Positions 2,510 to 57,200 of a stretch of DNA of 64,000 nt are shown here, in pieces. The stretch covers positions 1,984,001-2,048,000 of the forward strand of contig JBLDXI010000029.1 of NCBI GenBank assembly GCA_047495785.1. Reading direction: 5' to 3'. Numbering within the stretch: position 1 is the first letter of the stretch; every line of letters starts with the position of its first letter. Both the position numbers and the translations under genes were made by a program. The notes below the pieces were generated by a model. That model ran no database searches. It had not been told where the DNA came from and worked only from the letters and a program-made list of their open reading frames with translations. Origin of the DNA: Lepidodermella squamata. Its lineage: Eukaryota; Animalia; Gastrotricha.

Positions 2510-3620
2510 TTAACTTTCCGCTTGAAAAACAAAGAGTTAAAACACAAACAAGAACCAAATTTGATAAAAGATTGGGAATTGGAAATTATGACTTACCCCG
2601 GATTGCCCTTTGCCGAGCGCTCTCTGCCATCTCCATATGAACTTCAGGGTCAGCCGCATAAGCAGCAGAAAGGCAGCACAGCAGAGCCGAGTCTCGATTT
2701 GGTTTTCCAATCAATTGTCGATTGCTGCATTTGCAACACATTGTAAAGCAAACGATGATGTAGCTCAATGTCAGCAACGACTGGGCTGCGACGATCGCCA
2801 AGCCGATGGGCCACGAAATCAAGGTGGGGTCAAAGCTTGGCCTCGTTAGGGTGTAGACAAATCCGGCAACGGATGGTGCGTATAATATTGTCAGGAGAAT
2901 ATCCTGCAGTTGAAAACAGCATATTACTTAAAGGATCAATACTTTTTTGATGATTTATTCATACAAAGGAGCCACATTTTATTTAATTGAAAAATATATA
3001 TCTCTTACCGAAACCATGTCGTATGCCCAGCTGTGGCATTTTTTGACCAAAAGCTGTAGGACAGCGGCCAAGAGGCCGAAGAAAAACGGCGTGATCACCC
3101 ATCCTGAGTACGGCCAACTCTGCTGTAGTAGGTACTCAGCACCAACTTTGTCAGCTTTTTCTTCATAACGGCGCAGATCGACAATATAGACTATCGATAG
3201 TGCGATGCAATAAATGTTGAGCGTAAGCTGTAGCAGTCTTGCGATCCCATAACCTGATCGCAATCTTATTATTAAGCTCGGCGGAGACTTGACATGTTCA
3301 ACATTCATATTGGCTGAGTGTCCTTGAATGGTGGGCCTCGCTCTGACATAAACCGGAGTTCGATGAGAACTAAAATGCTGCTCATTATGTTTCATTTGGT
3401 TGGCTGGTGGAAAATCATAAACCGTTGGCCAATGGGTAGAGAATTGCTGGTCGTCAGGATGAAAACGGTGAGCAAGTGGAGGATAATTGTGAACTGGCCG
3501 ATGACTAGCTGACTGATGCTCATTGCCATAAAATTGGAGAAGCAGCTTGAAGCGACATCCAAATTTTTTTGTAGATTGGATACGAGAGCAGTCGAGAAGC
3601 ATTGAAAAAGCTGCGGGCAT
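2510..3620 (-). CDS. Tetraspan (MARVEL-like) family copy G1; exons 3620-3009, 2903-2597, 2520-2510; tail truncated by TAA
   Basis: Spliced translation with GT/AG sites at paralog-equivalent positions. An 11-nt deletion after the usual MSLQ start puts the upstream ATG at 3620 in frame. Exon 3 reads (A)ES* before a degenerate Gly tract. Confidence 0.65.
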
Positions 3621-4296
3621 AATGATTGACTCATGGTTGACTCATGGTTGCAGCACATCGTCCGGCAAAGCTACTTTTTAGTCTAGGGTATGTTGGCGTA
3701 AAAGTACGTAAAAGTTCACTTTTGCTAACACTACTTGCCGTTGCACAAAATCTTGATGCCTCCATGGCTCCCAAAAAGAGTCTGAAACCAGAAACGTATG
3801 AGAAAGCATAATTAGTTCTTGACCCAACTTCAACCAGTACTCAATTTATTAATGCCTCCGAACTTCATACATTCAAGTCGGACAGAATAGATTCTTGAAT
3901 TAAGTTCAATTTATTCCAATCGCTGTAACTACAGAACAATCAACGAGGAGATTATGAGAGGTGATGCCATGAGGGTGGCATTCAACAATGAGAATCCGGG
4001 AGGTATTCGGCCAAAAAATATTATATAAATGACTATGAAACTAGTTCCTGCATATTTCTTCCGGTGAAAGAGCCTTGGAAAGTGTGGATAATGTTTGGGA
4101 AATTAGTTTCGTTGTCTAAAAATTGGCTATAAATCCCGACAAAGTTCTAAAATTAAAGCCTTATCCGCAATGGATCTGTATTAAAATCGACTGAATATAA
4201 AATAATAAGAGAAAAATAAGCGAAAATGAATAAAAAAGACATTTTCGATTATTTTTTAAAGTTCTCTATCATACGAATATGTATAGGGTAAGTATT

Positions 4297-5977
4297 TCAG
4301 CAACCACATCTGTCTCCTCCACATCCTCCTCCTCCTCCACCACCGTCTCCTCCTCCTCCTCCACATCCTCCTCCTCCGTCTCCTCCACCACTGTACGCTT
4401 AAAAAGAGAGCAAAGAGAAAGGAAAAACGAGTACATACTAGGAGAGTCAAAAATAAGGGAATTGCGACTTACCCCGGTCTTCGCGTTGCCGTTCCTGCTC
4501 TGCTTCGATCTCCTGCTGCACTTCAGGGTCGTCATTATATGCAGCAGGAAGGCAGCACATCCACGATGAGTATAAAGCCGGTTTTCCAATCAGTTGTCGA
4601 TTGCTGCATTTGCAACACATCGAGAACCAAACGATGATGTAGCTCCTTGTCAACAAAGATTGAACTGCGACGATTGCCCAGCCGATGGGCCATGAAATCA
4701 ATAAAGTATGTTCGAAGCATGGTCTCGTTAGAGTGTAGATGAATCCGAAAAGGAACGATGTGTACAATATAGCCAGAAGAACATCCTGCAGTAAAACACA
4801 TAACGTTAAAAGTTATAGGAAGCCTTTGAAAAGATGCTAAGTTACTTTCTTAGTATAGGAAAGTATAGGCACATAAATCTACATATAATTTGTCCATTTT
4901 TTAACACCACGATGCATCCTAGGCTCCAAAAAAGAGTTAGAAACCAGAAACCATATGAGCCAGAAACCAGAAAGCATTTTGCCTAACTTCACCTTGCCTT
5001 GCCTTGCACTTACCTACCCAATTTGAAATGACGCGTCCGAGCTTCGATAAATTAAGTCGCACCGGTAGCGGGTCAATCTAGTTTAGTCCTGTTGGGGAGT
5101 CCGAAGCGTGCCCGTTCACGCTACGGCAAGCCCGAGCCCGTCGGGGAATCAGTGTTTTGCCTGTCCGCGCCCGGGTCGCTTCAATAAAATACTGCCTTTG
5201 CGCAACGTCTATGCTAAATCGAATGGATTTAAACAAAACTCGCATAAGCGAACGCGGGCAAGCGCAGGTGCTAAGCCGGGTGCGGGTAGAGAGCAATAGG
5301 TAGGCCAGTGTATTGCTGTGCGCGCTCAACTCCGCCGTGTTCGGGCATCAGGTTGCGACACCCGAGAGCGAAGGGCGATGATCACAGGCACGATCGTCGG
5401 CGGCTCAAGTGCGGACAAGCGTTCAACAATAGCACGGGTTTCCATTGTTTCCCGGCATGCTGGGCCCAAAACCTCACTTGGCCCGTGTGCATTGAAGCAA
5501 GATTTGGTTGAAAAAAATCACTCCTACCGAAAACATATCGTAAGCCCAGCTGTAGCACCTTTTGACCAAAAGCTGCAAGACAGCGGCCGCAGAAGGCCCA
5601 AAACGGATTGCAAAAACCCATGCCGACAGTAGCCAATGCTGATAACGCTGCATAGCGCAGTTTTTGGCAGCTTTGTCTTCGTAACGGTTTAGATCGACGA
5701 TGTGGGCTATCGAAAGAGCCATGAATACTAAGTTGAGTAAAAGCTGTAGCAGTCTTGCGATTCCATAGCCTGATCGCAGCCTAATACAAATTAAGCCAGG
5801 TTCCTTTTTCATGATGGGCAAGTGTGCTGGAACGCCCGGCATCGCTATGACGTAAACTTCCGGTCGATGAGTATCGAACAGTTGCCAATTCCGATGAAAT
5901 TGGCAAGCAGGTGGAGAAAAAGCTTGAAACGGAATTGAAAATGTGTCGATTGAGTAAAAAGCGCAAGCATGGTGCAT
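4297..5977 (-). CDS. Tetraspan family copy G2, apparently intact; exons 5977-5528, 4785-4473, 4397-4297
   Basis: All exons open with canonical splice sites; tail AYSGGGDGGGGCGGGGGDGGGGGGCGGDRCGC*. The usual start codon is ATT here, but an in-frame ATG lies at 5977. Confidence 0.75.
5089..5505. mobile_element. Degenerate GC-rich element related to the TGT...ACA MITE at 23691, in intron 1 of G2
   Basis: Begins ctgttgggg and ends with sequence resembling 24081-24160 (ccattgtt...ggcccgtgtgc...tgaagc..gattt). A homologous relic lies at 43277-43605. Confidence 0.55.
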
Positions 5978-6264
5978 TTAAATAGCTGAAGGCATCGTGA
6001 CAAACTCATGCCTGTAATCGCGTAATCGCTCTTAATTCAGAGCTTCCGATTTGGCTGAACTTTTGGTGGCAGGTTAGAGAACCGCTATACGCCACTGCGA
6101 AGGGCTGTCTATCAGCCTAGATTGACTAAACACTACATTCCTGTTCTTGCTTATAAAATGACAATTAAGTTATTTTTTTCAATGACTCGTGACTCACATT
6201 CAACTAACGTAAATGTAAAAATACTAACCCTGGTTTTTAGCAAATTTAGTAGTATGCAGTTAAT

Positions 6265-7285: not shown

Positions 7286-9115
7286 TTAGCAACCGCCACC
7301 AGCACCACAACCTCCCCCACCACCACCACCACCAACGCCACCACCACCGAAACCTCCTCCTCCTACCCAACCTCCGGTCGCTACAAAAAACAAGTAGAAA
7401 AAGGGAATTGATAACACAAACTACGTGAGCGAAATCAACGTCAGTGATATAGAAAATAGTCTCTCGATTGGGAACTTGTTGATCATAGACAATGATGTTA
7501 CATCATTGTCTATGTTGTTGATACATGAGCATTGATTTAGGAGGGTCAAATTTAAGAAAATTACGACTTACCCCGGATTGCGCGTTGTCGTTCATTCTCT
7601 GCCGCTATCTCCTGCTGCACGTCAGGTTCGGCCGCGTAGGCAGCAGGAAGGCAGCACATACACGATGAGTAGTGATCCGGTTTTCCAACCTTTTGTCGAT
7701 TGCTGCATTTGAAACACATCGAAAACCAAACGATGATGTAGCTCACCGTCAGCAGAATTTGAACCGCGAAGATTGCCCAGCCGATAGGCCAGGATATCAA
7801 AGTATGATTGAAGCATGGTCTCGTCAGGGTGTAGACAAACCCGGCAAGGAAGGATGTGTACAATATGGCCAGAAGAATATCCTGTAAAGTGTAACATCAT
7901 GTTTTAAGGAAGTACCATAGCTCATACAGGTATCTTAGAAGCTCCACCAGTAATTGTTCACAATTCAATAAAAAACCATTCGTCATGACAATAATAAAGC
8001 TCTCCTACCAAAAGCATATCGTAAGCCCAGCTGTAGCATCTCTTGACCAATAGCTGTAGGACAACGGTCATTAAGCCAAACAATGACGGCATGATGATCC
8101 ATCCTGAGTACGGCCATTTCTGCTTTAGTAGATGCTCCGCGCCAACTTTGGCAACTTTTTCTTGATAACGGCTCAGGTCGACAATATAGGCTATTGATAG
8201 AGCTAAGCCTACAATGTTGAGTACAAGCTGTAGGAGTCTGGCGATTCCATAGCCCGATCGCAGTCTAATTGAAATTATGCTCGGCGATGGAATGTCGGGC
8301 CTCGCTATTGCCATTTGTTGATTGCTCTCTGCTCTCTCCAGCTGAACTTCAGGGTCGGCCGCATAGGCAGCAGAAAGGCAGAACATGAAAACTGAGTAGT
8401 GATCAGGTTTTCCAATCAGTTGCTGATTGCTGCATTTGCAAAACATCGAGGACCAAACCGCGATGTAGCTAATCGTTAACAAAAATTGAACTGCAAAGAT
8501 TGCCCGGCCGATGGGCCACGAAATCAAAGTATGTTCGAAGCTTGGCCTCGTTATGATATAGACAAATGCGACAAGGAACGGTATGTACACTATTGCCAGA
8601 AGAACATCCTGTAAAATATAACAAAATGCTTTGTAGAAGCTACACAAATTATTTTTTTGCAAATCGATCCAATAATCTTTAGAGTAGAGAAATAATTTTG
8701 TAAAGTAAAGCTCCATTACCGAAGCCATGTTGTATGCCCAGCTGTAACATCTTTTGGCCAAAAGCTGTAGGACAGCTATTAATAGGCCAAAGAATGACGG
8801 CGTGATGACCCATCCTGAGTACAGCCAATTCTGCTGTAATAGATACTCTGCGCCAACTTTGACAGCCTCGTCTTTATAACGGCTCAGATCGACAATATAG
8901 GCTATTGATAGAGCTATATATACAATGTTGAGTATAAATTGAAGCAGTCTCGCAATTCCATAGCCCGATCGCAGTCTAATTGAAATTACGCTCGGTTCAT
9001 TTGTGACGGGTGGGTGTGCTGGAATGGTAGGCCTCGCTAAAACAATAACTGCCGGCTGATGAGTGGAGAACTGAACCTCGTTGCGATAAAATTGATGAGC
9101 AGCTTGAAATGGCAT
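7286..9115 (-). CDS. Fused double-domain (8-TM) copy G3; exons 9115-8720, 8608-8009 (chimeric exon 2/exon 1), 7881-7572, 7380-7286
   Basis: ORF 7958..9133 shows the exon 2 end (ESNQQMAI) running in frame into a second exon 1 (ARPDIPSPSIISIRLRSG). All splice sites are canonical; the tail ends GGCGAGGGC*. Confidence 0.8.
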
Positions 9116-10131: not shown

Positions 10132-11741
10132 TTAGCCACCACCACATCCTCCACATCCACCTCCACATCCTCCACCACATCCTCCACCACATCCTCCTCC
10201 GCCATCACCTGCACCACTTGCCGCTTGAAAAAACAAAGAGACGAGTTTCAAATATCTGAGACTCATAGATAGGAGAATATGACTCACCTCGCTTCGCGCT
10301 TTGCAGAGCCATCTCTGCTCTTATCAGCTGAACTTCAGGTTCGGCCGCGTAGGCAGCAGATAGGCAGCAGATGCACGTGTTAACCGAGTAGTGATCTGGT
10401 TTTCCAACCAGTTGTCGATTGCTGCATTTACAACACATCGAGAACCAAACGATGATGTAGCTCACCGTCAGCAGAATTTGAACCGCGAAGATTGCCCAGC
10501 CGATAGGCCAGGATATCAAAGTATGTTTGAAGCATGGTCTCATTAAGGTGTAGACAAATGCGGCAAGCAACGGTATGTACAATATCGTCAAGAGAATATC
10601 CTTTAAAATATATCACATTTCAGGAAGCTCCATCAGTGATTGTTCGCAGTTGAAAAAATCTATATGTCCAAACAGTAATAAAACTCACCGAAACCATATC
10701 GTAAGCCCAACTGTAGCAGGTTTTGACCAAGAGCTGTAGGACAGCGACCAAGACACCGATGAAAGACGGCGCAACTACCCATCCTGAGTACAGCCAATCC
10801 TGTGGACCAACTTTGTCTTGATAACGGCTCAGATCGACCATATAGACTATTGATAGAGCTATGTATAAAATGTTGAGCGTAAGCTGAAGCATTCGGGTGA
10901 TTCCATAACCTGAATGCAGTCTTATCGAAATTAAACTCGGTTTAGGTTTGACATCCTCAACATCAATTACGGATGGCTGGGATAGAATGTTCGGCCTCGC
11001 TATGGCGTAAACGTGCGAACGGTGATCAGTGATGAACCGTTGCTCGCTGCGATGAAATTGGTGGGCAATTGGAGGATAATTATCAACACGTCGGTGAATA
11101 GATGGCTGTTGCTTGTTGCGATGACATGGGTGAGGTTGAGGAACAGCTTGAAAAGTGTGGCGCTGGCTGCTTCTAGACTCAGAACAGTAGTTGAGGGCCA
11201 TCGTTGACGCTCGTGGGGTGACGATGGTGGCGCTCGTCGCCTTAACGGTCGGTTTGGAGCGCGCAACGAGCCTCTGAGACGGCGCAACCCTGGCACGCTC
11301 GCGCTTGTGTAACGCCCGGATCGCTAAATACAAGGCGTGGCGCCGACGCTTTTCAGGGCCGTCATCCATCTCAGCCAATTCTCTGCCTTCCGATTTCAGC
11401 CAGTCTTTGCGAGCATCAGGCGGCATTCGTTGTAGCCGCCTCTCGAGTTGCCGGTCCAGGCTGTCAGCGCGGGCGTTGGGCCGAGCACTCTGTTGCAAAG
11501 ACCAGACGCCCTCATGCTTGCGAGCCAGGGACGTTTGGTGTTCCCATTCGGGCGTAGCAGGTTCATAAGCACCACGAGTTGCGGCTGAACGACTTCGGCG
11601 AGGCTTTCTCAGAGGCGAATGTGCTGTTACGGCGAGCATGGTGCCCTTGGAGGGACTTGTAGTGAACGTTGAGTCCCCGCCCGTCGCTGGCGGGTAAGTC
11701 ATAAGCGTCTTGGGAGTTTTTGTTGTCTTCTTGCCGGTCAT
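10132..11741 (-). CDS. Copy G4 with long basic N-terminal extension; exons 11741-10689, 10600-10288, 10223-10132
   Basis: Open 373-aa ORF ending in the family exon 1; exon 2 has an AAG acceptor; tail AASGAGDGGGGCGGGCGGGCGGGCGGCGGG*. Confidence 0.75.
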
Positions 11742-12164: not shown

Positions 12165-12335
12165 ATTTCACATGGTGAACCAAACGATGATGTAGCTCAT
12201 CGTCAGCAACGATTGCACTGCGACGATCGCTCAGCCGATGGGCCTCGAAATCAAAGTATGTTCGAAGCATGGTCTCGTTAAGTTGTAGACAAAGCCGGCA
12301 AGAAATGGTACGTATAATATAATTAGACGAAAATT
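12165..12335 (-). pseudogene. Orphan 5' half of exon 2 (G5)
   Basis: Homologous to exon 2 (TRPCFEHTLIS.PIG*AIVAVQSLL), with an in-frame stop, truncated and without exon 1. Confidence 0.8.
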
Positions 12336-13212: not shown

Positions 13213-14325
13213 TTAGCAACCTCCTCCTCCGCATCCCCCTCCGCCTCCACATCCTCCTCTTCCTCCACCACATCCCCCACCACTTGCCGCTTGAAAAACA
13301 AGAAGAAATTGCGGGTGAAAACAAAAACTGAGTGTTCAGTGATATATTCATCTAAGACTTAACGATAGGATTTACTTTGCATTGCGTTTTGCCTATCTAT
13401 CTCTGCTCTCTCCACCTGAACTTCAGGGTCGTCCGCATAGGCAGCAGAAATGAAGCACATGTTAACTGAGTAGTGATCCGGTTTTCCAACCAGTTGTCGA
13501 TTGCTGCATTTGCAACACATCGTAAAGCAAACGACGAAGTAGCTCACCGTCAGCAAAGACTGAACTGCGAAGGTTGCCCAGCCAATGGGCCAGGATAGCA
13601 GCTCATGTTTGAAGCATGGTCTCGTTAGAGCTTGGAGAAATCCGACAAGGAACGATATGTACATTATGGCCAGAAGAATATCCTATAAAATATCTTGTTA
13701 AAATAACAACAAACATTTAAAGAAAATCTCATAGAAGCTCCGCCACTTAGTTTTTGCAATTCAATAAAATAATCTGTATATCAAAAAAGGTGTGAGCGAA
13801 TCCGCCACGGAACTGTATGAATAATATGGTCACGAGAATATCCTGGGACAGAAAGGGACGCATTTTGTATGTATGTTGATTTCTAATGTTTAATAGAAAG
13901 CGTATATCTCTCAGCGAAGTCATATTGTAGGCCCAGCTGTAGCATCTTTTGACCAAAAGCTGCAGAATAGCGGCTAAAATGCCTAAGAAAGACGGCGTGA
14001 TGATCCATCCTGAGTACGGCCAATTCTGCTGTTGTAAATTCACCGCATCAACTTTGTCTTTATAAAGGCTTAGATCGACGATATAGACTATCGCTAGAGC
14101 CATGTATACAATGTTGAGTACAAGTTGAAGCAGTCTTGCGATTCCATAGCCTGATTACAGTCTTATTGAAATCAAGCTCGGTTTAGGTCTGACTATCTCA
14201 ACATCAATGATGGGTGGTTGGGCGTAAATGGTGGGCCTGGCTATGAGACATAAACTGCCGGTCGAAGAGAAGCAAGCTGCTGCTCATTTTGCTCAGGACC
14301 GTACACCGCTAGCGGATGGGTTGAG
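13213..14325 (-). pseudogene. Copy G6; exon 1 5'-truncated with a dead donor; exons 13682-13376 and 13289-13213 intact
   Basis: Exon 1 donor reads tcg|CTgag instead of GT, with a 2-nt insertion in AVYV(I) and no promoter. Tail TASGGGCGGGRGGCGGGGGCGGGGC*. Confidence 0.7.
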
Positions 14326-17300
14326 AGTGAAAACAAAAACTGAGTGTTCAGTGATATATTTATCTAAGGCTTAATGATAGGACTTACGTTTCATTGTGTT
14401 TAGCCTAGCTATCTCTGCTCTCTCCGCCTGAACTTCAGGGTCGTCCGCATAGGCTGCAGAAATGAAGCACATGTTAACTGAGTAGTGATCCGGTTTTCCA
14501 ACCAGTTGTCGATTGCTGCATTTGCAACACATGGTGAACCAAACGACGAAGTAGCTCATCGTCAGCAACGATTGCACTGCGACGATCGCCCAGCCGATGG
14601 GCCACGAAATCAAAGTATGTTCGAAGCCTGGTCTCGTTAAGTTGTAGACAAAGCCGGCAAGAAATGGCGCATACAATATAGCCAGGAGAGAATCCTGTTA
14701 AATATGTTAACATGTCGTTAGAAACGTTGAATAACTCGGATTTAGGTTTGTTTACTTCCATTTCATGATGATAGGTGACAAGTATAAAGTCTTTTGTTAT
14801 TGCCTCGTCAATCCACGTTAAAAAGCCGCTTTTTACTTGTCACCCGTGCCCTTCGACCGGATATAAACAAGCCGAAATCCGAGTTATTCAACGTCGCTAA
14901 CGATGTTTTTAACAAAATCTCATAGAAGCTCCGCCAGTTAGTTTACGCAATTTAATCGAATAATCTGCATATCAAATAAGGTGTAAGCGAATCCGCCACG
15001 GAATAGCATGAATAACATGGTAAGGAGAATATCCTGTTGTGAAAATTATCATGCTACTCATACGTTTCTAGTGATTCATTCATATAAGAGAGATAAATTA
15101 AGCGTATCCTAATTATTATTCCTAGGTAATTAATATAATTATTAGTAGAAAAACATATCTCTCTTACCGAAATCTTATCGTAGGCCCAACAGTGGCAACT
15201 TTTGACCAGAAGCTGCAGGACAGCGGCTAAAAGGCCGAAGAAAGACGGCGTGATGATCCATCCTGAGTACGGCCATTCCTTCTGAAATATTGAAGCATCA
15301 CCAGCAGCAACAACTTTGTCTTTATAAAGGCTCAGATCGATGATATAGACTATCGCTAGAGCCATGTATACAATGTTGAGTACAAGTTGAAGCAGTCTTG
15401 CGATTCCATAGCCTGATTACAGTCTTATTGAAATCAAGCTCGGTTTAGGTCTGACTATCTCAACATCAATGATGGGTGGTTGGGCGTAAATGGTGGGCCT
15501 GGCTATGAGACATAAACTGCCGGTCGAAGAGAAGCAAGCTGCTGCTCATTTTGCTCAGGACCGTACACCGCTAGCGGATGGGTTGAGAGTGAAAACAAAA
15601 ACTGAGTGTTCAGTGATATATTTATCTAAGGCTTAATGATAGGACTTACGTTTCATTGTGTTTAGCCTAGCTATCTCTGCTCTCTCCGCCTGAACTTCAG
15701 GGTCGTCCGCATAGGCTGCAGAAATGAAGCACATGTTAACTGAGTAGTGATCCGGTTTTCCAACCAGTTGTCGATTGCTGCATTTGCAACACATGGTGAA
15801 CCAAACGACGAAGTAGCTCATCGTCAGCAACGATTGCACTGCGACGATCGCCCAGCCGATGGGCCACGAAATCAAAGTATGTTCGAAGCCTGGTCTCGTT
15901 AAGTTGTAGACAAAGCCGGCAAGAAATGGCGCATACAATATAGCCAGGAGAGAATCCTGTTAAATATGTTAACATGTCGTTAGAAACGTTGAATAACTCG
16001 GATTTAGGTTTGTTTACTTCCATTTCATGATGATAGGTGACAAGTATAAAGTCTTTTGTTATTGCCTCGTCAATCCACGTTAAAAAGCCGCTTTTTACTT
16101 GTCACCCGTGCCCTTCGACCGGATATAAACAAGCCGAAATCCGAGTTATTCAACGTCGCTAACGATGTTTTTAACAAAATCTCATAGAAGCTCCGCCAGT
16201 TAGTTTACGCAATTTAATCGAATAATCTGCATATCAAATAAGGTGTAAGCGAATCCGCCACGGAATAGCATGAATAACATGGTAAGGAGAATATCCTGTT
16301 GTGAAAATTATCATGCTACTCATACGTTTCTAGTGATTCATTCATATAAGAGAGATAAATTAAGCGTATCCTAATTATTATTCCTAGGTAATTAATATAA
16401 TTATTAGTAGAAAAACATATCTCTCTTACCGAAATCTTATCGTAGGCCCAACAGTGGCAACTTTTGACCAGAAGCTGCAGGACAGCGGCTAAAAGGCCGA
16501 AGAAAGACGGCGTGATGATCCATCCTGAGTACGGCCATTCCTTCTGAAATATTGAAGCATCACCAGCAGCAACAACTTTGTCTTTATAAAGGCTCAGATC
16601 GATGATATAGACTATCGCTAGAGCCATGTATACAATGTTGAGTACAAGTTGAAGCAGTCTTGCGATTCCATAGCCTGATTACAGTCTTATTGAAATCAAG
16701 CTCGGTTTAGGTCTGACTATCTCAACATCAATGATGGGTGGTTGGGCGTAAATGGTGGGCCTGGCTATGAGACATAAACTGCCGGTCGAAGAGAAGCAAG
16801 CTGCTGCTCATTTTGCTCAGGACCGTACACCGCTAGCGGATGGGTTGAGAGTGAAAACAAAAACTGAGTGTTCAGTGATATATTTATCTAAGGCTTAATG
16901 ATAGGACTTACGTTTCATTGTGTTTAGCCTAGCTATCTCTGCTCTCTCCGCCTGAACTTCAGGGTCGTCCGCATAGGCTGCAGAAATGAAGCACATGTTA
17001 ACTGAGTAGTGATCCGGTTTTCCAACCAGTTGTCGATTGCTGCATTTGCAACACATGGTGAACCAAACGACGAAGTAGCTCATCGTCAGCAACGATTGCA
17101 CTGCGACGATCGCCCAGCCGATGGGCCACGAAATCAAAGTATGTTCGAAGCCTGGTCTCGTTAAGTTGTAGACAAAGCCGGCAAGAAATGGCGCATACAA
17201 TATAGCCAGGAGAGAATCCTGTTAAATATGTTAACATGTCGTTAGAAACGTTGAATAACTCGGATTTAGGTTTGTTTACTTCCATTTCATGATGATAGGT

Positions 17301-17872: not shown

Positions 17873-18285
17873 GCTATTGATAGAGCCATGTATACAATGT
17901 TGAGTATAAGTTGAAGCAGTCTTGCGATTCTATAGCCTGATCGCAATCTAATTGAAATTAAGCTCAGTTTAGGTCTGACTATCTCAACATCAATGATGGG
18001 TGGTTCGACATTCTCAGCATTCATGACGGTTGGGTGTGCTTGAATGGTTGGCCTCGATATGAAATAAACCGGCGGTCGATGAGAAGCTAACTGCTGCTCA
18101 TATTGTTGAGCTTTGTTGGCTAGTCGAGACTCATAAACCACTGGCCGGTTGGTAGAGAGCTGCAGGTGGTCGGGATGAAATTGGGTAGCGACTGGAGGAC
18201 CACTATGAACCGGTTGATGAATTGCGAACGGAGGCTCATTGCCATTGAATTGGCGAGCAGATGGAGGGGCAGCTTGAAGCTCCAT
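16765..18285 (-). CDS. Copy G9; exons 18285-17692, 17218-16912 and a possible substitute last exon 16832-16765
   Basis: Promoter, uORF and exons 1-2 are intact. The native Gly/Cys exon is missing downstream; a cryptic tag| acceptor gives PVYGPEQNEQQLASLRPAVYVS*. Confidence 0.6.
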
Positions 18286-20609: not shown

Positions 20610-20622
20610 AATGTTTGTAAAT

Positions 20623-26709: not shown

Positions 26710-26711
26710 TG

Positions 26712-41188: not shown

Positions 41189-44100
41189 TTTACTCGAGTT
41201 TACTCGAGATTATTAAAAAATCCGCCGTTAAGGCGAATTTTTTTCTAATTACGCGTTTTCTCGATTAGAATCAAAACTCGGTGTTCTAACATATATCGTT
41301 AGCAACCCGCCAAAACAACCACTTTACTATTTATAGCTTTTTTATGGAAAGTACGCTCGACTTTTGAACGTAAATTCAAATTACGATGAGTACGATCAGT
41401 GCTCAAAAAGCCGAACGTACTCCCTCTTTACGTTCGGCTCGTCATACGAAATTGAAAAGCAGGTTCTCAAAGTTTTTAAAGCTCTGATTTATGAGGAAAT
41501 ATTTATGATACTGCTTCAAAATTTGTATGGTTGAATAGAGCGTGAAAAGTTGCACTAGATCGTGAAACCTTATGTCTGCATCGTGAAAACTCAAGGCGCA
41601 ATTAAAACACAAAGTTAGTGTGCGGATAAAAAACAATTTTTTTTATTTCGGCAGTATTAAATAAGCGTGAGAGTCCAGTCTCTTATTATTTGTCTATGTA
41701 TGCTCCATAGATAACGTAGTGATCAGAAAAAAGACTTCCTATCTCGTAATGGCAACAAATTACATTCAAATACCGAGTAAAAAGTCCACCATAAAAGTGT
41801 TGACAGCTTTTATTCGATTTTTCATTTTTCGATTTTCACGCACTCCGTTCTCTATGTGTATATATTGGACATATTTACGACTCCAAGTCCAATATTTGCA
41901 TATACCCCGAGGCATAGTAGTATCTACCGAGTGTCAGGGCTCCGTTGAAATACCTAGCCCCACGTGGCGAAGGTTAAAAAATCATGGAAAATGGGAAAAT
42001 AAAACATCCAACTTAATTTTTCATCAAAAAGTGAGCTTTTCGCCTTTTTTAAATCCAACGCTCATTCGGTCGATTTTCATTTTGATTTTCACTCGCTTTT
42101 TTGCCGCCGGATCTTCGCGTCAAACTGGCATGCTGCTACGATGAAGAATCGCACAATGGGTCGAGCTATTTGAACTGTCGGCTCATCAAATCAACCAGGC
42201 GAGTGAATTCGGCTCATGGCAACTAGTTCGCCGATCTGGTTATTGTCGATCTCAAGCTCAAACAAGGTTTCGATCCCGTACGAGGAAGCGTGTCGTCGAA
42301 CCAGTTCGAGCCAGGAACGAAGGCTGATGGAATGGTACGAAATGCAAGCCGAATACGGCGCCGTTTTGACAATTTCCAGGGTCCAGGATGAATGCTGCGC
42401 GATTTTCTCAACATTGAGGGCGACTGCTACTCGGATTTCGCAAGTGTCCCGGTGGAGTTCTGGGTTTTATGGACATCGGAGCTGACTGCTGCTCGATTTT
42501 CACTGAATTGTGGCCGAATGCTGCTCGATTTTCTCGAAATTTGGGGTGAATGCTGCCAGATTTTCGAGCCGCCCCAGCTTTTCCAAGAGATTGTTTGATT
42601 TTGAAAAATAAAGCTGTACCTCGGGTTTCTCGGGTTTCATGAGTTTCATGGGTCTGAACAATAGACAACTGTCCAATATGTGCTCCTTCTTAAACAATTA
42701 AGTGTCCAATATGTAAAAATCAACTGTCCATTATGTAAAATTATAATTACATATAATTACATATAGCCCTAACATATACTTGGCCTAGGGGTATATAAAG
42801 ATGAAAATTGCAAATTTGAGGCGAAATTCTCTGCTCACGAATAAAGGTGGATTTTTTATTACACGAAATCTTGGTGTTCAAAGTTGTACTTTTGGGGTAC
42901 CCCTTGCCAAATCCTCACGCTTGCGAATTTCCGAGAATAAAACATATCAGGGTGTTACGCAAGGCGGCCCAGTCGAAATACGTTGAAAACCCGACCAAAG
43001 TCGCATCTGCTGAACTTACACAGCACATTTAAATTTGCATGGACGTAGGTGTTCAAAGTTGTACCGGATTACAATTATTAATTTTTTCTAACACTACGGT
43101 GGCTCCTAGGCTCTCAAAAAGAGTCAGATACCAGAATCCATATGATCTAGAAAGCAGAAAGCCAAATGGGAGCTTTCGGCCGAACTTCATACACTACCCA
43201 ATTTAATAATGCTTCCGAACTTTGATAAATTAAAGCCGGACGACGCGCACCGGAAACGGGTCAATCCATGTTAGTCCTGCTGGGGCCCAAGGCCCAAGTC
43301 TGAGACGTGCCCGTTTCTCGCTGCGGCATGTAAAGGTTCGATGAAAATCGAATGAATTTTTGCAAATATATAAAACACAGGCAAGCGCAGGTGCCAACCC
43401 GAGTGCGGGGAGAGAACAATTGCTAGGCCAGCGTATTGCTGAGCGCGCTTAACTCCGCCGCGCTCGGACATCGGGATGATAAAGAGCGATGTCGTTGACC
43501 CGAGAGCGGCGCGCGCAAGCGCTCAACAATAGCATTGGGTTCCATTGTTTACCGGCATACTCGGCCTAACACCTCGCCTAGGCCGTGTGCAATGAAGCGA
43601 GATTTGTTTGAAAAAATATCTCTCCTACCCAACACATTTCTTAAGCCCAGCTGTAGCACGTTTTGGCCAGAAGTTGTGGCACAGCGACCAAGATGCCAAT
43701 AACTGACGGCACAATGACCCATTCCGAGTCTGACCAATGTGGCCACCGTCGAAACACAACGCCAAATTTAACAGCATTGTCTTTATAACGCCTCAGATCG
43801 ACGACAAAGGATATCGCTAGAGCCATGAATACTATGTTGAATAAAAGCTGTATCAGTCTTGCAATTCCATAGCCCGATCGTAGCCTAATGCGAATTAAGC
43901 TGGGTTCTGTTTTCATGATGGGCAAGTGTGCCTGAACGCCGGGCAACGCTATGACGTAAACTTCCGGCCGTTGTGTATCGAACAGCTGCCAATTCCGATG
44001 AAATTGGTAAGCAGGTGGAGAAAAAGCTTGTAACGGCATTTATAATTTGTCGATTGAGTAAAAAGCGCAAGCGAGGTGCATTTAAATAGTTGAGGTATGA

Positions 44101-45557: not shown

Positions 45558-46634
45558 TTAGCAACCACCAACTCCTCCTCCTCCTCCTCCCCCACCACCA
45601 CCAGCACCGCAACCGCCAACACCACCCAATCCTCCGGCAGCTACAAAGACACAAACCGAAATAGGCATGAAAACACAAACTACGAGAGCGAAATTAACGG
45701 AGTCAGTGATATAGAAAATAAGGTCTTCAATCGGAAACGTTTTGGTATGTGAGCATTGATTTAGGAGAATCAAAAATAAGGAAATTGCGACTTACCCCGA
45801 ATTGCGCGTTGCCGTTCATTCTCTGCTGCCATTTCCAGCTCAACTTCAGGGTCGGCCGCATAGGCAGCAGAAGGACAGCTAATACAAGGCGAATAGTGAT
45901 CCGGTTTTCCAACGAGTTGTCTATTGCTGCATTCGCAACACATCGTGGAAAAAACGATGATGTAGCTCGTCGTCAACAACGATTGGACTGCGACGATCGC
46001 CCAGCCGATGGGCCACGAAATTAAAGTGTGGTCGAAGCATGGTCTCGTTAGGACATTGTTGACAAACGCGGCAAGGAAGGATGTGTACAATATGGCCAGA
46101 AAAATATCCTGTAAAATGTAACACCATCTTTTAAGGAGGGTTTCATATCTCGTAGAAGTATCTTAGAAGCTCCGCCAGTAATTGTTCGCAATCAATAACA
46201 GAAAACTATAAGCCATAACAATAATAAAGCTCTCCTACCAAAAGCATATCGTAAGCCCAGCTGTAGCACCTCTTGACCAAAAGCTGTAGGACAGCGGCCA
46301 ATAAGCCGAACAATGTCGGCGTAATGACCCAGCCAGAGTACGGCCAATTCTGCTTTAGTAGATACTCAGCACCGAATTCGGCAACTTTGTCTTGATAACG
46401 GCTCAGATCGACAATATAGGCTATGGATAGAGCCAAGTATACAATGTTGAGTACAAGCTGTAGCAGCCTGGCGATTCCATAGCCTGATTGCAGTCTAATG
46501 GAAATCAAACTCGGCTTATTCGTGTTGGATGGCCTCGCTGTAATGGCGGGCCTCGCTATAACGATAACCGCTGACCCATGAGTAGAGAACTGAGGCTCGT
46601 TGGGAAGAAATTGGTGAGCAGCTTGAATCGGCAT
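45558..46634 (-). CDS. Copy G17, intact; exons 46634-46239, 46108-45796, 45640-45558
   Basis: Open and canonically spliced; tail AAGGLGGVGGCGAGGGGGGGGGGVGGC*. Confidence 0.85.
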
Positions 46635-47648
46635 TGAAAATACATGATTTCAGAATGCTCATCATGCAATGGAATTCATTCAAAGCTAAATGTATTACGT
46701 CTGACTCATTCCTGAGTGAAATCGTTCTCAACTTAGGGCTTCACATTTGTTGAACATTTGTTGACAGCTTTGTGATCCGCCACACAACAGACTACTGCAG
46801 ATAGCTACGTATGAGCAAAGACTGACTAAATGCAACACTTCTATATGTATAACATATTTTCATGTATCATTGTGTGATTTACTTATTACTCATTATACAG
46901 TGACTATTGAAGAGTCGCTTTTTTCTGCTTCATGACTCATGAATCATAGCGATAACAGGATAGTAAATAATATTATATGACTCATAGTTTGTCCTGGTAT
47001 TCGTAACAAAGGTGATACCCCTTTTTCGCGCGGCGGCCAATGTTCGAATTAATCGAAAGGCGACTAAAAAATCAAGTTCCACTTTCCGAGCCAAGGCACA
47101 ATTATGACTTCCTGGTCACTGAAGGTTCGATGTCGTTATTACAGACGCGTAATTGATTTTGACAAGTCTGATGTTAAAGATTCCCCATGCTTCCAAAATG
47201 GCGTCAAATTAAATTGATTTTTTTGCACAGTAATAAGCAGATTAATTACAAAACGCATCGCTTGTTTGGCCTTTACTCACTCTTGCGCGGCCTAAAGCAC
47301 ATTGTCGTAGATAGCCTTTATCTAGGCACATTGTGATACAGGCTCATTTTGTGTAGAATAACATTCGATTATATTTCGAAGATATATTTGCCAGAGAACA
47401 TTGGTTGCTGCCTAGTTAATTCCTCCTGATTGAGAGGAGTGATTCTCCTATGATTGAGGCTAAAACACGATACAGAAATAGTGTTTCTGTATTCCTGTAC
47501 AATACAGAAACACTTTTATTAAGATGGACTTTTTATTATCGCATTTTCCTATATAAATGGCGTACAAGATCACTTTTTCCCGCACTTTCTAGCTACGTTT
47601 GTCCGAGTTTTTAGCAGATACAGAGGAGAAAAGCAATCTCGGATTTAC

Positions 47649-49577
47649 TCAGAATAAAGAAACACTTTTCTTGTACGAATGACTGTATGAATCGAGGTTC
47701 CGCAGGAACCGAAGATGAATACAGTCATGAGTATTGAAAAAAAGAGAAATTGAGAGTGAAAACAAAAACACGAGCGAAATCTGAGTGATAGGAAAAAATG
47801 ATAATTTACCTCGTATTGCGATTTGCCGATCAATATCCGCTCTCACCAGCTGAACTTCAGGGTCAGCCGCATAGGCAGCAGAAATGCAGCACATGTTAAC
47901 GGAGTAGTGATCCGGTTTTCCAATCAGTTGCCGATTGCTGCATTTGCAACACATCGAGAACCAAACGATGATGCAGCTTATTGTCAGCAAAAATTGAACT
48001 GCAAAGATTGCCCAGCCGATGGGCCAGGATATCAGATTATGTACGAAGCATGGTCTCGTTAGAGTGTAGAGAAATCCGGCAAGGAACGATATGTTCAATA
48101 TGGCCAGAACAATATCCTGTGAAATATGGCAACTTAACTTTTCAAAAAAGCCTCTTAGAAGCTCTGAATTCGATCAAATAATCTGTAGGGCAGAAAAATA
48201 AGTTGGTTGAATAAGCACACTTACCGAAACCATGTCGTAAGCCCAGCTGTGGCATCTTTTGACCAAAAGCTGTAGGACAGCAACCAAGAGGCCGAAGAAA
48301 GACGGCGTAATGACCCAGCCGGAGTATAGCCAATGCTGCCGTAGTCGATACTCATCGCCAACTTCGACAACTTCGTCTTTATAAAGGCTCAGATCGACGA
48401 TATAGGCTATCGCTAGAGCCATGTATGCAATGTTGAGTAAAAGCTGAAGCAGTCTTGCGATTCCATAGCCTGATCGCAGCCTGATTGAAATTAGGCTCGG
48501 TTTAGGTTTGACATCCTCAATATCAATCACTGATGGCTGTGATTGAATGTTCGGCCCCGCTATGACGTAAATCGCCGACCGAGGATCAGTGAACTGCTGC
48601 TCGCTGCGATGTAATTGGTTAGCAGAATCATAAACAGCCGATCGATTGATGTTATTATTGATCTGCTGGTTGCTGGGAGAAAGTCGGTAAGCAAATGGAG
48701 GATAATTGCGATGAAATTGGTAAGCAGGTGGTGAATCAGGTTGAAACGTGTGCTGGTGTCTGCTTCTAGACTCAGAACGGTGTGGAAGGGCACGCGTTGA
48801 TGCTGGGCGACTGACTGGGGTAGCGCTCGTCGCTTCAACGGCCGGCTTTGGTCGCGCCACGGGGTCCTGAAACGGCGCAACCCGGGCACGCTCGCGCTTG
48901 TGTAAGGCCCGGATCGCTAAATAGCGGACGTGGCGTCGTAGCTTTTCGGGGCTATCATCCAGCTCAGCCAATTCTCGGCGCTCTATTTTCAACCAGTCTT
49001 TGCGAGCATCAGGCGACATGAGTTGTAGTAGCCAATCAAGTTGACGGTCCAGGCTGTCGGCGCGGGCGTTGGGCCGTGTACACCGTCGGGGAGAGCCAGC
49101 GGCCTCACGGGTGAAAGCCGTCGTTTGCAGTTTCGACTCGGGCGTAACGGGTTCATAAGCGCCACAGGTTGCAGCAGAACGACTCCGGCGAGGCTTTTCC
49201 AGAGGCAACTGTGCTGCAGCTGAAGCGGCCGGCTTGAGCTTGTCCTTGGAGAGACTTTTATTCAACGTTGAGGCCCCGCCCGTCGCTGGCGGGTAAGCCG
49301 TAAGCGTCTTGGGCACCTTCGTTTTTGCTGCTGTTTTCTTGCCGGTCATGTTGCTTTTCTCGGCCGATCCACCAGTTGTGGCGGGGACTGGTTCTAGAAT
49401 CAAAACGAGACGTTTCGTCGAAAAGCAGCTTTTATTTTATTTGATAAAACAGGCCCTGAGCGGGAAATCGTTCAATAATGAAAATATCATACGAACAGGT
49501 GGACACGTTCGCATACCGGGTTCGTGGGCAGGTGGAGCAGTTGGCCGGACGAGATAGAAAATAAGACTGGTTCTCAT
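47649..49577 (-). CDS. Copy G18 with captured N-terminal domain; putative exons 49577-49517, 49393-48225, 48116-47810; Gly/Cys exon lost
   Basis: 409-aa ORF paralogous to G4. An upstream mini-exon MRTSLIFYLVRPTAPPAHEP splices in phase (gtatgc...tag). The exon 3 acceptor is replaced by unrelated sequence; read-through stop at 47649. Confidence 0.65.
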
Positions 49578-50146: not shown

Positions 50147-51517
50147 TCAGCAACCGCCTCCTCCGCACTCTCCCCCTCCACAACCTCCTCCTCCGCCACA
50201 TCCGCCTCCTCCTCCACCACATCCGCCTCCTCCTCCGCCACATCCCCCTCCGATTTCCCTATTAATTGCCGCTTAAAAACAGAGAGACGAGTTAAAAACA
50301 CAAAAAAATTGAGCGATAGGAAATGATGACGTACCTTGAATTGCTCTTCGCCGAGCTATCTCCGCCCTCTCAAATTGGACTTCTGGGTCGGCCGCATAGG
50401 CAGCAGAAATGCAGCACATTATAGTTGAGTATCGCTTCGGTTTTCCGATCAGTTGTCGATTGCTGCATTTGCAACTCATCGTGAAGCAAATGATGATGTA
50501 GCTCAATGTCAGCAACGATTGAAGTGCGACGATCGCCCAGCCGATGGGCCAGGATATCAGATTATGTTCGAAGCATTGTCTCGTTAGAGTGTAGACAAGG
50601 CCGGCAAGAAATGGTACGTATAAAATGATCAGAAGAAAATCCTGTAACGAAATTAGCATTACATTTTATGGAAAGTATTGTACAAGTTCTACTGTTTCGG
50701 TCAGATAAAACAATACAGTGCAGCATCGTTACTACGAACTCCTATAATGCGAGTAAAAGTTCGTTTTGAAAGTTCGTTATAGCGATTCTGCACTGGATTT
50801 TGATCATAGCTCTCCTACCGAAATAATATCGTAAGCCCAGCTGTAGCAAGTTTCGACCAAAAGTTGCAGGAGCGCGGCTATGATGCCGAAGAAAGACGGC
50901 GTAATGACCCAGCCCGAGTATAGCCAATGCTGCCGTAGTCGATACACATCGCCAACTTTGACAACTTTGTCTTTATAAAGGCTTAGATCGACGATATAGG
51001 CTATCGCTAGAGCCAAGTATGCAATGTTGAGTATAAGTTGAAGCAATCTTGCGATGCCATAGCCTGATCGCAGTCTAATTGAAATTAAGCTTGGTTTAGG
51101 TTTGACATGCTCAACATCAATGGTGGGTGGTTGTGTGTAAATAGTAGGTCTTGCTATTACATAAACCGCCGGCTGATGAGCAACAGCTCGCCACTCATCA
51201 GCCGGCTGGGGATCGGGTGGAGAACCATAAACCGCTGGCCGATGGGTCGAGAACTGTTGGTCGCCGGGATAATATCGGCGAGCGTGTGGAGGATAATTGT
51301 GAACCGACCGATGAATGGCAAACTGTTGCTCATTGCCATTAATTTGGTGAGCAGATTGAGGACCATACACCGCTTGTCGATGGTTAGAGAACGGCTGGTC
51401 GCCGGAATGAAATCGGTGAGCCAGTGGTGGATAATTTTGAACCGGCCGATGAATTGCGAACTGTTGCTGGTTGCGATGAAATTGGTAAGCAGATTGAGAA
51501 GCAGCTTGAAGCTCCAT
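50147..51517 (-). CDS. Copy G19, intact; exons 51517-50819, 50641-50335, 50271-50147
   Basis: Open and canonically spliced; longest N-terminal repeat tract; Gly/Cys tail with six Cys ending GGGGC*. Confidence 0.85.
50716..50795. mobile_element. 80-bp Tc1/pogo-like mini-MITE in intron 1 (shared with G10 at ~19836-19920)
   Basis: ta|cagtgcagcatcgtta...tatagcgattctgcactg. Confidence 0.5.
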
Positions 51518-52979
51518 TGAACATTTTGTGTGAATTGGATACGTGGATTCGAGGCGCATTTAAAAGCTGATTTCATCATGGCTGACTCATTCCTGAGCGT
51601 CATCGCCCTCAGCTTGGTTTATTTTAATTTATTGCAGATTCGAGTGAAATTTTGGTCTTCACTCAAATCTGCATCTCTGTATGAGTCAAGACTGACTAAA
51701 TGCTTAAATCATTCAGTATATTTACCGATGGTTACCTGATTTGAATAGCACTCTTCGTACAGGATTTTAATGCTTGATTTTCATGTTCAGTACATTAGGA
51801 GAAAAAATCTTTTCACTTAGGTTTTGAACCGCCTTGACATCCGAAAGCGCAGCCAAATGGGCCAGGCTAAAAGTTTTGCTCTCCAACAGGCAATTAGGCC
51901 GAGATTGGACTTTGCAAACAGGATGCATGATGTATTTCGTCTTTCAAATACTTCTGGGGGCTTAACTTATACATGGAACGTAAGGAGGGATTGATGTATG
52001 AGCACGCAGAGCGCTATTACAACTATACCTATATCACGTTCGCTACATTGGCAACGAATGAGTACTGAGTCATTCATGACTCAAAGCCACACTTTTTCAG
52101 TACTATAGGCCACATAGCGCCTCCGGAGTTTTCAACAAATAATAAGCAGATGTAAATAGCGTTGCCACTTTTGGCACGAGATTTAGCTTTTTCCGACTTA
52201 AAGAGTCTAAATGGCTGCATGTCGTATTTTCTGAAATACTAACCCGGCTTGTGCAAAATTGAAGCTTCGAAAACTAGTAAAACTTAGGCTTCTATTCAAG
52301 ACCAGGCTTCTCGAGATAGGGCTATGCAACCCGGAAGCAGCCAAGTCAGTCTTTCAACACTCAGCAGTTTTGAAGCACGAAAACACGCATCCCGCCTGTA
52401 TAACGTCTGGGCCGATAGGACGATTTCGACCACTTAACCAAAATCAAGGCAGCGCTGTCGAAAGTTGACAAAATTATACACACTATAGTCATTGAGACTA
52501 TGCCGGACACTGTAGTATTTTTTGAATGACCGGATAATGAGATGAGGTTACCTTAATTTCAATTTGAAAAAAATCGGAATTTCACACCTCGGTTACCAAT
52601 TTTAAAATAGCCATATTTTCAAAACCGTGTAGGATAGCGGTCTGATTGTTTCAAATTCTTGTAGCCAACATCGATAAGGAGTATTGCTAGAAAGGGCGAT
52701 CAAAAATAAATCAAAATGAAATGTTGGTGCACTGTCGAAGTCAGAATTTCGAAATCGCCCTTATGGCCATTTTAGGGTTAATCTTTGACCCGCGCGCTGA
52801 TTGGTCAATTTTTTTGCTATGACTCCGGGATGAAACAATTTAGTAACCTTACCCTAGATGCGATCTGAGTTTTAAAAAATGGCAATTAGCGTTCTTTTTT
52901 CAACTTCAACTTCAAACGAAATTTCTGAGTAAATAATTGAACTTGAGACTTAAGTTTATTTATGAAGCATGAGAAGCAT

Positions 52980-55424: not shown

Positions 55425-56648
55425 TTAGCAACCACCTCCGCAACCGCCCCCTCCGCATCCTCCTCCACCTCCGCATCCTCCTCCACCCCATCCCCCACCA
55501 CTTGCCGCTTAAAAAAAGAGAAATTGCGAGTGAAAACAAAAAAAGAGTGTTCAGTGATTCGAATATCAGACTTTCCTGATAGGATTTACCTTGCATTGCG
55601 CTTTGCCTATTGGCCGTCTCTACAATCTCCAGCTGAACTTCAGGGTCGGCCGCATAGGCAGCAGAGAGGCAGCACATGTAAACGGAGTAGTGATCCGGTT
55701 TGCCAACCAGTTGTCGATTGCTGCATTTGCAACACATCGTGAAGCAAACGATGAAGTAGCTGACCGTCAGCAACGACTGAACTGCCAATATTGCCCAGCC
55801 GATGGGCCAGGATATCAGATTATGTTTGAAGCATGGTCTCGTTAGAGTGTAGAGAAATCCGGCAAAGAACGATACGTAAAATATGGCCAGAAAGATATCC
55901 TGTAAAATATGGCCACAAAGTTTTTAAGAAAATCTCGTAGATAGTTTTCGCAATTCAATCATATATTCTGCATATGAAATCAGGTGTGAACAAATCCACA
56001 AAGGAACGGTATGAAATAATATGGTCAGGAGAATATCCTGGGACACATTATGTATATTAATTCCTAATTATTAACAGAAAAACATATATCTCTTACCGAA
56101 GCCCTATTGTAGGCCCAGCTGTAGCACCTTTTGACAAAAAGCTGCAGGACAGCGGTTAAAATCCCGAAGAAAGACGGCGTGATGATCCATCCTGAGTACG
56201 GCCAATTCTGCTGTAGCAAATTCAAAGCACCAACTTTGTCTTTATATAGGCTTAGATCGACGATATAGGCTATCGCTAGAGCCATGTATGCAATGTTGAG
56301 TATAAGTTGAAGCAGTCTTGCGATGCCATAGCCTGATTGCATTCTTATTGAAATTATGCTCGGTTTAGGTTTGACATGCTCAGAATTCATGACGGTTGGG
56401 TGTGCTTGAATGGTGGGCCCCGCTATGACATAAATCGCCGGTCGATGAGAAACAAACTTCTGCTCATTTTGTTGAACTTGGTTGGCTGGTCGAGAATCAT
56501 AAACCGCTGGCTGATGGGTAGAGAGCTGGTTGTCGGGTTGAAATTGGGTAGCGACTGGAGGATCATTATGAACCGGTTGATGAATTGCGAACGGAGGCTC
56601 ATTGCCATATAATTGGTGAGCAGATGGAGGAGCAGCTTTAAGCTCCAT
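55425..56648 (-). CDS. Copy G20, intact; exons 56648-56097, 55899-55590, 55507-55425
   Basis: Open and canonically spliced; tail AASGGGWGGGGCGGGGGCGGGGCGGGC*. Confidence 0.85.
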
Positions 56649-56905
56649 TCAAAATGTTGAATGAATTGGATATATGTGGATTCGAGGCGCATTTGAAAGC
56701 TTGAGGCATCATGGCTGATTCATTCCTGAGCGTGAACAACGTGTTTTCTGAGTCGGTTTGTTTAATATATTTTGTTGGAATTTCGGCTCAGCTTCCGGTA
56801 GTGGGTTTTATATACCTTAGAAGATACTCCGAGGAGCTATGCATTAGTCAAGACTGACAAAATGTGTAATTCCGCCTTCTATAGCATTTGTAATGACGAC
56901 TGGGA

Positions 56906-57200
56906 AGCTCATTGCCATTTAATTGGTGAGCAATTGGAGGAGCAGCTTGAAACGGCATGGAAAATGTTCAAATGAATTGGAAACGTGCAGTCGAGGCGCA
57001 TTGAAATAGCTGCATCATGACTGACTCATTCCTGAGCATAAAAAACGTTTTTTCTTAGTCGGTTCGTTTAAATTTTGTTGGAAATTTGGTTTAACTTTTC
57101 ATAGCGGATTTAATTTACCTTAATGGAAGCTACTCCGAAGAGATAAGCATGAGTGAAGACTGACTAAATGTTCAATTCTACCTTTTATAGCTGATGTAAT
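56906..57200 (-). pseudogene. 5' fragment G21: promoter, uORF and first ~17 codons (MPFQAAPPIAHQLNGNE)
   Basis: Tandem duplicate of the G20 upstream region, joined at the gggaagctc microhomology. Confidence 0.75.

Follow-up and report, generated by a model that had tools for sequence, protein, structure and literature searches.

The genome of the gastrotrich Lepidodermella squamata contains a head-to-tail tandem array, 55 kb long, of about 22 loci of a four-pass membrane-protein gene, all on the minus strand. The array lies in a 64,000-nucleotide (nt) stretch (GenBank assembly GCA_047495785.1, contig JBLDXI010000029.1, positions 1,984,001 to 2,048,000; referred to here as the window, with positions counted from its first letter). 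On balance, the encoded proteins are probably very divergent MARVEL/MAL-like proteolipids, restricted to this lineage and held in a birth-and-death array. For now they count as an orphan family that is well documented, not as a new system.

Organisation and conservation of the array

The window is eukaryotic DNA with a G+C content of about 42%. To map the array, a single translation of each of exons 1 and 2 was run in tblastn, giving 20 exon-1 and 21 exon-2 segments from 2586 to 56390, on the minus strand only. A six-frame scan found exactly ten Gly/Cys-rich tail open reading frames (ORFs), every one on the minus strand; nine are located downstream of a family exon or fragment, the exception being an orphan at 39954-40127, which may belong to locus R. 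Position 2510 is the last base of the gene A stop codon. Together with the promoter motif described below, these data give about 22 loci (Table 1), in agreement with an earlier sequence-only reading that had counted about 21 copies.

Six genes are clearly intact, namely DC, E, Q (with a divergent tail), S, U and V, and gene B is doubtful, with ATT at the family start codon and a divergent second transmembrane helix (TM2). In four further genes (A, J, P and T) the membrane core is intact and the tail is lost or degenerate. The roughly ten remaining loci are pseudogenes or fragments, several of them disrupted by transposons; F, K, M, N and O are fragmentary, truncated or degenerate. The paralog tree is star-like, with C-S as the sole supported pair.

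A gene consists of three exons separated by GT-AG introns in phases 0 and 1, with splice sites at the same codon positions in every copy that keeps intact sites; exon junctions were placed from sequence alone. Exon 1 ends ...SWAYDMxS directly before GT, four codons past S-W-A-Y (phase 0). Exon 2 follows a ...ttacag acceptor, starts with the codon GAT (D-I-L-L) and ends ...A-I-R-G before GTAAGT (phase 1), whilst exon 3 is preceded by a pyrimidine tract and reads A-A-S-G-G-G..., a Gly run with Cys every 4-8 residues. The spliced models of B, DC, E, Q, S, U and V are single open frames of 264-486 amino acids (aa). The seven open models are consistent with the earlier proposal that the fragmented ORFs would splice into one protein, and the codon positions common to the intact copies bear out the conserved phases (0, 1) proposed with it.

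The conserved splice sites and phases, together with patterns of substitution and flanking signals, indicate that these are real genes. The ratio of nonsynonymous to synonymous substitution (dN/dS) has a pairwise median of 0.37 in the exon-1 core and of 0.34 in exon 2 (66 pairs, dS ~0.5). Nucleotide identity between paralogs is 76% and 80% for the two exons, whereas intron 1, at 55%, is no more alike than random 105-mers (58%). The frame of the tail is preserved, a conserved block lies upstream, and AATAAA is found 54-169 nt past the stop in five genes.

The upstream block, (A/G)CTCAGGAATGAGTCAGCCATGATGCCTTCAG followed by a TTTAAAT-like box, precedes nearly every copy, and in DC, J, S, U and V its distance to the downstream M(E/P)LQAA start is 61-67 nt, while the sequence on either side has diverged. 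CAGGAATGAGTCAG, allowing up to 3 mismatches, occurs 16 times against 4.9 expected and on the minus strand only, and there are exactly 8 occurrences of ATGAGTCAG, compared with 0.5 expected, each of them on the minus strand and upstream of a family gene. Because the copies are paralogs these counts are not independent, and the argument lies in the kept block versus the diverged flanks. The block contains the core TGAGTCA, the classical AP-1/TRE (phorbol ester response element) heptamer; read on the opposite strand, GCTGACTCAT fits NF-E2/MARE-type (Maf recognition element) sites as well. At the other end of several genes (stops at 7286, 10132, 45558 and 55425, minus strand), a conserved GGTTTCAGC-like block 6-10 nt past the stop may be an element of the 3' untranslated region.

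The array would have grown by tandem duplication and unequal crossing-over and would now be undergoing birth-and-death turnover, as suggested by stops, frameshifts, lost donors and transposon insertions. It is highly improbable that it consists mostly of dead DNA that now has no function, whether as a duplicated segment in decay or as cargo of a transposon. The majority of the loci are broken, two neighbouring 1262-bp units are 100% identical, transposons lie within exons and introns, and no RNA support was found, all of which such decay would explain; it would not explain a dN/dS of ~0.35 over the 66 pairs, exons conserved beside introns at random identity, or the retention of frame, terminal Cys and promoter block. 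Contigs from sequence runs, none recorded as RNA, also covered intergenic DNA when aligned to the window, and no joint among them skipped an intron. Short pieces from one run that is labelled as another organism, mostly 90-95% alike, lie mainly on exons 1 and 2; judging by these pieces a relative may have the family.

Protein architecture and relationship to MARVEL

The N-terminus is 36-290 aa long, is not hydrophobic and lacks a signal peptide. It carries between 1 and ~6 degenerate H/Q/P/Y repeats of the type Q-Q-F-S-T-H-R-P-A-V-Y, and in gene U this region includes a 138-nt tandem duplication. Genes E (10968-11741) and T (48528-49349), both on the minus strand, have in common a G+C-rich, K/R-rich N-terminal extension of about 200 aa; they are 57% identical over the aligned N-terminal regions containing this stretch, and both have lost the start codon that the family normally has behind the promoter block. 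No family in Pfam or the ESM Atlas matched the extension.

Kyte-Doolittle analysis detected four hydrophobic segments per domain, cleanly in S and, after overlapping TM4 peaks were merged, in A, DC, E, U and V; gene B gave three, with TM2 below threshold. TM1 is preceded by I-R-L-R-S-G-Y-G-I-A-R-L-L-Q-L and is followed by a loop of ~25 aa that varies more than any other part of the core. TM2 starts with W-(L/P)-Y-S-G-W-V-I, the TM2-TM3 loop (~12 aa) reads K-R-C-Y-S-W-A-Y-D-M, and the TM3-TM4 loop (~12 aa) reads T-L-T-R-P-C-F-x-H-T-L-I-S, with at most one Cys, before the near-invariant TM4 start L-I-S-W-P-I-G-W-A-I. TM1, the TM2-TM3 loop and TM4 all have basic residues beside them, and the first loop is basic too. 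TM4 is followed in order by M-C-C-K-C-S-N-R-Q-L-V-G-K-P-D-H-Y-S, another M-C-C, S-A-A-Y-A-A-D-P-E-V, a short helix and finally the tail. The tail is (G3-7C)n, 24-41 aa long with 2-6 Cys, and eight of the ten tail ORFs have Cys immediately before the stop. Units of 12-33 nt are repeated in tandem within the tails, which therefore grow by slippage.

Two AlphaFold2 models both contain four long helices. In the first, D was folded through its in-frame, stop-free 111-nt intron, and TM2 extends across the 37 intron-coded residues (predicted local distance difference test, pLDDT, 65; predicted template modelling score, pTM, 0.30); the second is the natural exon-2/exon-1 stretch of the fusion gene DC, in permuted order (pLDDT 67, pTM 0.37). 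Four hydrophobic segments and the absence of a signal peptide, both claimed in the sequence-only reading, are confirmed by the hydropathy scan and the non-hydrophobic N-terminus.

Two candidate relationships were rejected. An internal duplication of TM1-2 as TM3-4 received an hhalign probability of 1% and ~0-4 bits between the cross-compared hidden Markov models, and Smith-Waterman scores against shuffles gave p=0.03-0.5; MAFFT repeatedly aligned exon-2 products onto exon-1 columns. It was rejected because the W-P-x-G-W motif is all that the halves share. Likewise, a PDB profile match (E=0.1) of the Cys cluster to the cereblon CULT zinc site does not keep the CxxC spacing and is ascribed to chance.

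No homolog was found by phmmer against 1.84 billion representative proteins, by a word-indexed profile search of a 5.8-billion-protein set even at E<=10, or in the PDB and metagenome contigs. The expansion had been described as lineage-specific, and the total lack of homologs fits this description without proving it, as the protein sets may lack this lineage: a neighbouring ANF-receptor-like ORF (58630-60762) likewise found no homolog in the word-indexed protein search. The architecture had also been called unrecognised, and this stands, in that the repeats, four TM helices, Cys cluster and Gly/Cys tail are real and a full-text literature search returned no description of them, nor, for animals, of any MARVEL or tetraspan family that has a tail of this kind or forms an array like this one.

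Three kinds of weak signal point to MARVEL. PF01284 is the only Pfam family that recurs on exon-1 products, in 11 of 14 copies (best E=0.0022, 18.5 bits, below the gathering cutoff of 32.8 bits), with residues 12-84 aligned onto profile positions 2-59 of 135, first half against first half; on long pieces MARVEL appeared at E=0.13, and a read-through ORF scored 12.8 bits. Among the named ESM Atlas clusters, those of MARVEL come closest (ranks 1, 3 and 5; scores 0.84-0.81). The family TM2-start consensus, L-Y-S-G-W-V-I-T-P-S, has G-W-V in common with the MAL-family signature (Q,Y)GWVM(F,Y)V(S,A)(V,L), with Ile for Met (PMC8682038, plasmolipin review). The M-shaped topology of the MAL family, with both ends cytosolic (PMC8682038), would fit a long N-terminus that has no signal peptide.

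The array proteins thus resemble MAL, plasmolipin and CMTM in being small, with four TM helices, predicted cytosolic ends, a short TM2-TM3 loop, G-W-V at TM2 and a basic L-R-S-G...R-L-L-Q-L lead-in to TM1 that aligns from profile position 2. They differ in their sub-cutoff Pfam score, which derives from the first half of the domain only, and in having no detectable homolog in the databases searched. In the full-text literature search, no MARVEL protein was described with H/Q/P/Y repeats, a CCKCS...MCC cluster or a Gly/Cys tail exon. Three other four-helix families do not fit. The large second outer loop with CCG of tetraspanins is absent (the TM3-TM4 loop has ~12 residues), as is the ~50-aa first loop with W-GLW-C-C of claudin/PMP22 (the TM1-TM2 loop has ~25 residues and no Cys pair), and neither family matched in Pfam; MS4A/CD20 (PF04103) gave no Pfam match at E<=10 and one Atlas cluster at 0.79.

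Several observations weigh against the MARVEL assignment and the wider reading that includes it. The best PF01284 score is far under the gathering cutoff. Exon 2 (TM3-TM4) gave no MARVEL signal in Pfam; its products matched scattered domains of unknown function down to E=0.015, a noise level only about ten-fold worse than the MARVEL match. PDB profile searches returned no MARVEL protein, the Atlas calibration treats scores below 0.9 as no more than leads, and the G-W-V match covers three residues, with one extra residue between Y and G. Fold searches with the two models, which are poor stand-ins, gave no match over a template modelling score of 0.5. A dN/dS of ~0.35 signifies moderate constraint, and the gene models, like the acylation, topology and AP-1 control discussed below, are derived from the DNA sequence. 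The MARVEL-like character put forward in the sequence-only reading is weakly supported, by PF01284 on exon 1 and by the Atlas neighbours, and not by exon 2 or the PDB profiles.

These gaps could also mean that a genuinely new four-helix family arose within the lineage and that its MARVEL signals reflect convergence of hydrophobic helices, which we regard as possible but rather unlikely. Consistent with such an origin, the phmmer, profile, PDB and metagenome searches yielded zero homologs, the Pfam match is sub-threshold and spans half the domain while exon 2 is silent, and the Atlas calibration, at which 4/10 matches share a family, rates such matches 'probably wrong'. The counter-argument is that three independent kinds of weak signal agree, namely PF01284 in register in 11 of 14 copies, the top named Atlas neighbour and GWV. 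If the family is of true MARVEL type, as we favour, it shows how far the domain can drift beyond sequence detection.

MYADM-type proteins are double-MARVEL proteins, and gene DC resembles them in having two complete four-helix domains in one chain. It differs in that its doubling is a recent in-frame deletion fusing neighbouring genes, not an old family trait.

Possible roles of the tail and of the promoter

In the divergent MARVEL/MAL-like reading, the membrane core would have a cytosolic N-terminus, four helices, a short cytosolic TM2-TM3 loop and a cytosolic C-terminus, and the variable H/Q/P/Y repeats would form a docking region in the cytosol. Multiple sites for S-acylation or, alternatively, for thiol cross-linking would be provided by the CCKCS...MCC cluster together with the flexible (G3-7C)n tail. 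Either modification would anchor the tail at the inner leaflet, promoting partition into ordered membrane patches or their scaffolding, as for MAL/plasmolipin. Cysteine-string protein and other multiply S-acylated proteins offer a parallel, with dense Cys beside the membrane and a likely role as DHHC acyltransferase substrates; in the array family the Cys are spaced by 3-7 Gly and are not packed in a string.

Each gene would be its own transcription unit behind a conserved promoter with an AP-1-type basic leucine zipper (bZIP) site, and the conservation of this site suggests inducible expression (stress, wound or immune). A role in stress, barrier or immunity, raised in the sequence-only reading, is speculation to which the conserved AP-1-type site upstream of nearly every copy adds one new hint. 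At its boldest, the idea is that AP-1/bZIP-induced MARVEL-like tetraspans knit a reinforced layer at the inner face of the plasma membrane through their multi-Cys Gly tails, by acyl chains or disulfides, yielding a barrier or stress armour that is specific to the lineage and has no counterpart described so far; we hold this to be improbable.

A different role for the tail, compatible with either view of the core, would be as a structural or redox module, in which disulfides bind glycine loops into a rigid layer under the membrane in the manner of loricrin or KRTAP5, or the thiols act as a thiol or metal buffer. The (G3-7C)n pattern with 2-6 Cys and its expansion by 12-33-nt slippage units agree with such a module. 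Mammalian cornified-envelope Gly/Cys proteins are AP-1 regulated, and the AP-1-type site is conserved here. Loricrin/KRTAP5-type proteins also have long Gly runs punctuated by Cys and grow by repeat slippage; however, these are proteins without a membrane domain, either soluble or cross-linked, whereas the array tail is 24-41 aa on an integral membrane protein. The cytosol is reducing, the Cys spacing is unlike the C-X-C or C-C clusters of metallothionein, and CCKCS at the membrane edge is a classic S-acylation context. We consider a structural or redox tail unlikely.

If expressed, the array would be among the larger private membrane-protein families of this animal, and its combination of a MARVEL-like core with this type of tail is described for no tetraspan protein in the literature search. 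Intact, tail-less, doubled and K/R-extended versions behind similar promoters form a natural series for probing the role of the tail.

Individual loci and neighbouring elements

The coordinates of the loci are given in Table 1. Locus O, 92% identical in aa to A across the 106-aa exon-1 core, is a recent duplicate of it. Among the 1262-bp units, the first two are 100% identical (14695-17218) and the third is 85% identical; the identical pair arose either by tandem duplication very recently or as an artefact of assembly.

Table 1. Loci of the array and promoter motifs, in window coordinates
Feature	Positions	Strand	Details
Whole array	2510..57034	-	from tblastn segments, tail-exon scan and promoter-motif matches
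Locus A, decaying	2510..3620	-	exon 1 to 3009, exon 2 2903-2597, tail exon 2520-2510; 11-nt deletion after family start codon shifts frame; 4-TM core open; tail is AES-stop
Gene B, doubtful	4297..5977	-	exon 1 5977-5528, 742-nt intron, exon 2 4785-4473, tail 4397-4297; exons open; only upstream ATG falls in TATA-like box
Gene DC, fusion	7286..9115	-	exon 1 9115-8720, fused exon 8608-8009, exon 7881-7572, tail exon 7380-7286; in-frame head-to-tail fusion, D exon 2 continuous with C exon 1; 467 aa, eight TM helices; fused exon within stop-free ORF 7958-9133 (391 codons)
Gene E, intact	10132..11741	-	exon 1 11741-10689 (includes ~200-aa K/R-rich extension), exon 2 10600-10288, tail exon 10223-10132; 486 aa
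Locus F	12171..12335	-	exon-2 fragment with in-frame stop
Locus G	13213..14283	-	exon 1 with stop, CT replacing GT donor; exon 2 13682-13376 and tail exon 13289-13213 open
Three 1262-bp tandem units	13433..17218	-	exon 2 and partial exon 1 with TAA stop in each
Gene J	16912..18285	-	exon 1 18285-17692, 473-nt intron, exon 2 17218-16912; start and 4-TM core intact; no tail exon; pseudo-units follow
Locus K, pseudogene	19479..20147	-	exon 1 truncated, donor lost, exon-2 frameshift
Locus L, broken by two insertions	20341..25746	-	exon 1 25746-25177; exon 2 split; tail exon ends 20341
Locus M	28247..28600	-	exon-2 fragment and tail exon ending GGCGC
Locus N	30831..31250	-	degenerate exon 1 (45% identity), no exon 2
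Locus O	31979..32877	-	duplicate of A; exon 2 truncated at 31979
Gene P	33398..35516	-	exon 1 35516-35130, 1265-nt intron, exon 2 33864-33555; 4-TM core intact; degenerate tail exon, stops within former Gly/Cys codons
Gene Q, intact, divergent tail	38192..39307	-	exon 1 to 38846, exon 2 38725-38416, exon 3 38262-38192; start 39247 or 39307; exon 3 Gly/Trp-rich, single Cys, last residue Ile
Locus R	43629..44039	-	exon 1 with in-frame stop (SWA*); no exon 2 found
Gene S, intact	45558..46634	-	exon 1 46634-46239, exon 2 46108-45796, tail exon 45640-45558; 264 aa
Gene T, tail exon lost	47810..49349	-	exon 1 49349-48225, exon 2 48116-47810; K/R-rich N-terminal extension and intact 4-TM core
Gene U, intact	50147..51559	-	exon 1 51559-50819, exon 2 50641-50335, tail exon 50271-50147; 51517 likelier start than 51559; 41-aa tail with six Cys
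Gene V, intact	55425..56648	-	exon 1 56648-56097, exon 2 55899-55590, tail exon 55507-55425; 315 aa; tail terminates GGGC; promoter motif 56715-56728; AATAAA 84 nt past stop
Promoter block, example	46701..46714	-	CAGGAATGAGTCAG, AP-1-type TGAGTCA core
Other 14-mer starts	6001, 9176, 12038, 18350, 25892, 39310, 44107, 49656, 51582, 56715, 57021		

Locus L is interrupted twice. Its exon 2 is split by a G+C-rich foldback element of ~610 bp (23691-24299) with 226-nt inverted arms that are 91% complementary, and intron 2 holds a long interspersed nuclear element on the opposite strand, with an 844-aa ORF (20657-23191, plus strand) containing reverse-transcriptase (E=5e-31) and endonuclease domains. 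Within intron 1 of the same locus, a 197-bp tandem repeat is present in three copies with an 86% match (24483-25078). A short repeat with inverted ends (47370-47763) begins exactly at the exon-3 acceptor of gene T; contig depth over it is 2700-5000, compared with ~100-200 nearby, and it is probably a high-copy miniature inverted-repeat transposable element.

No Rfam entry matched within the window. Downstream in window coordinates, the ANF-receptor-like ORF on the minus strand is a single exon of 710 aa with a weak match to the ANF_receptor ligand-binding domain (E=4e-5, just under cutoff). Diverged promoter motifs at 52065-52078 and 53850-53863 (minus strand) have no family exons behind them and are probably remnants of deleted genes. 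Upstream of gene V, a 306-bp tandem duplication (56593-57216) duplicates the promoter block, giving the motif at 57021-57034, which has its own M-P-F-Q-A-A-like start and no gene body.

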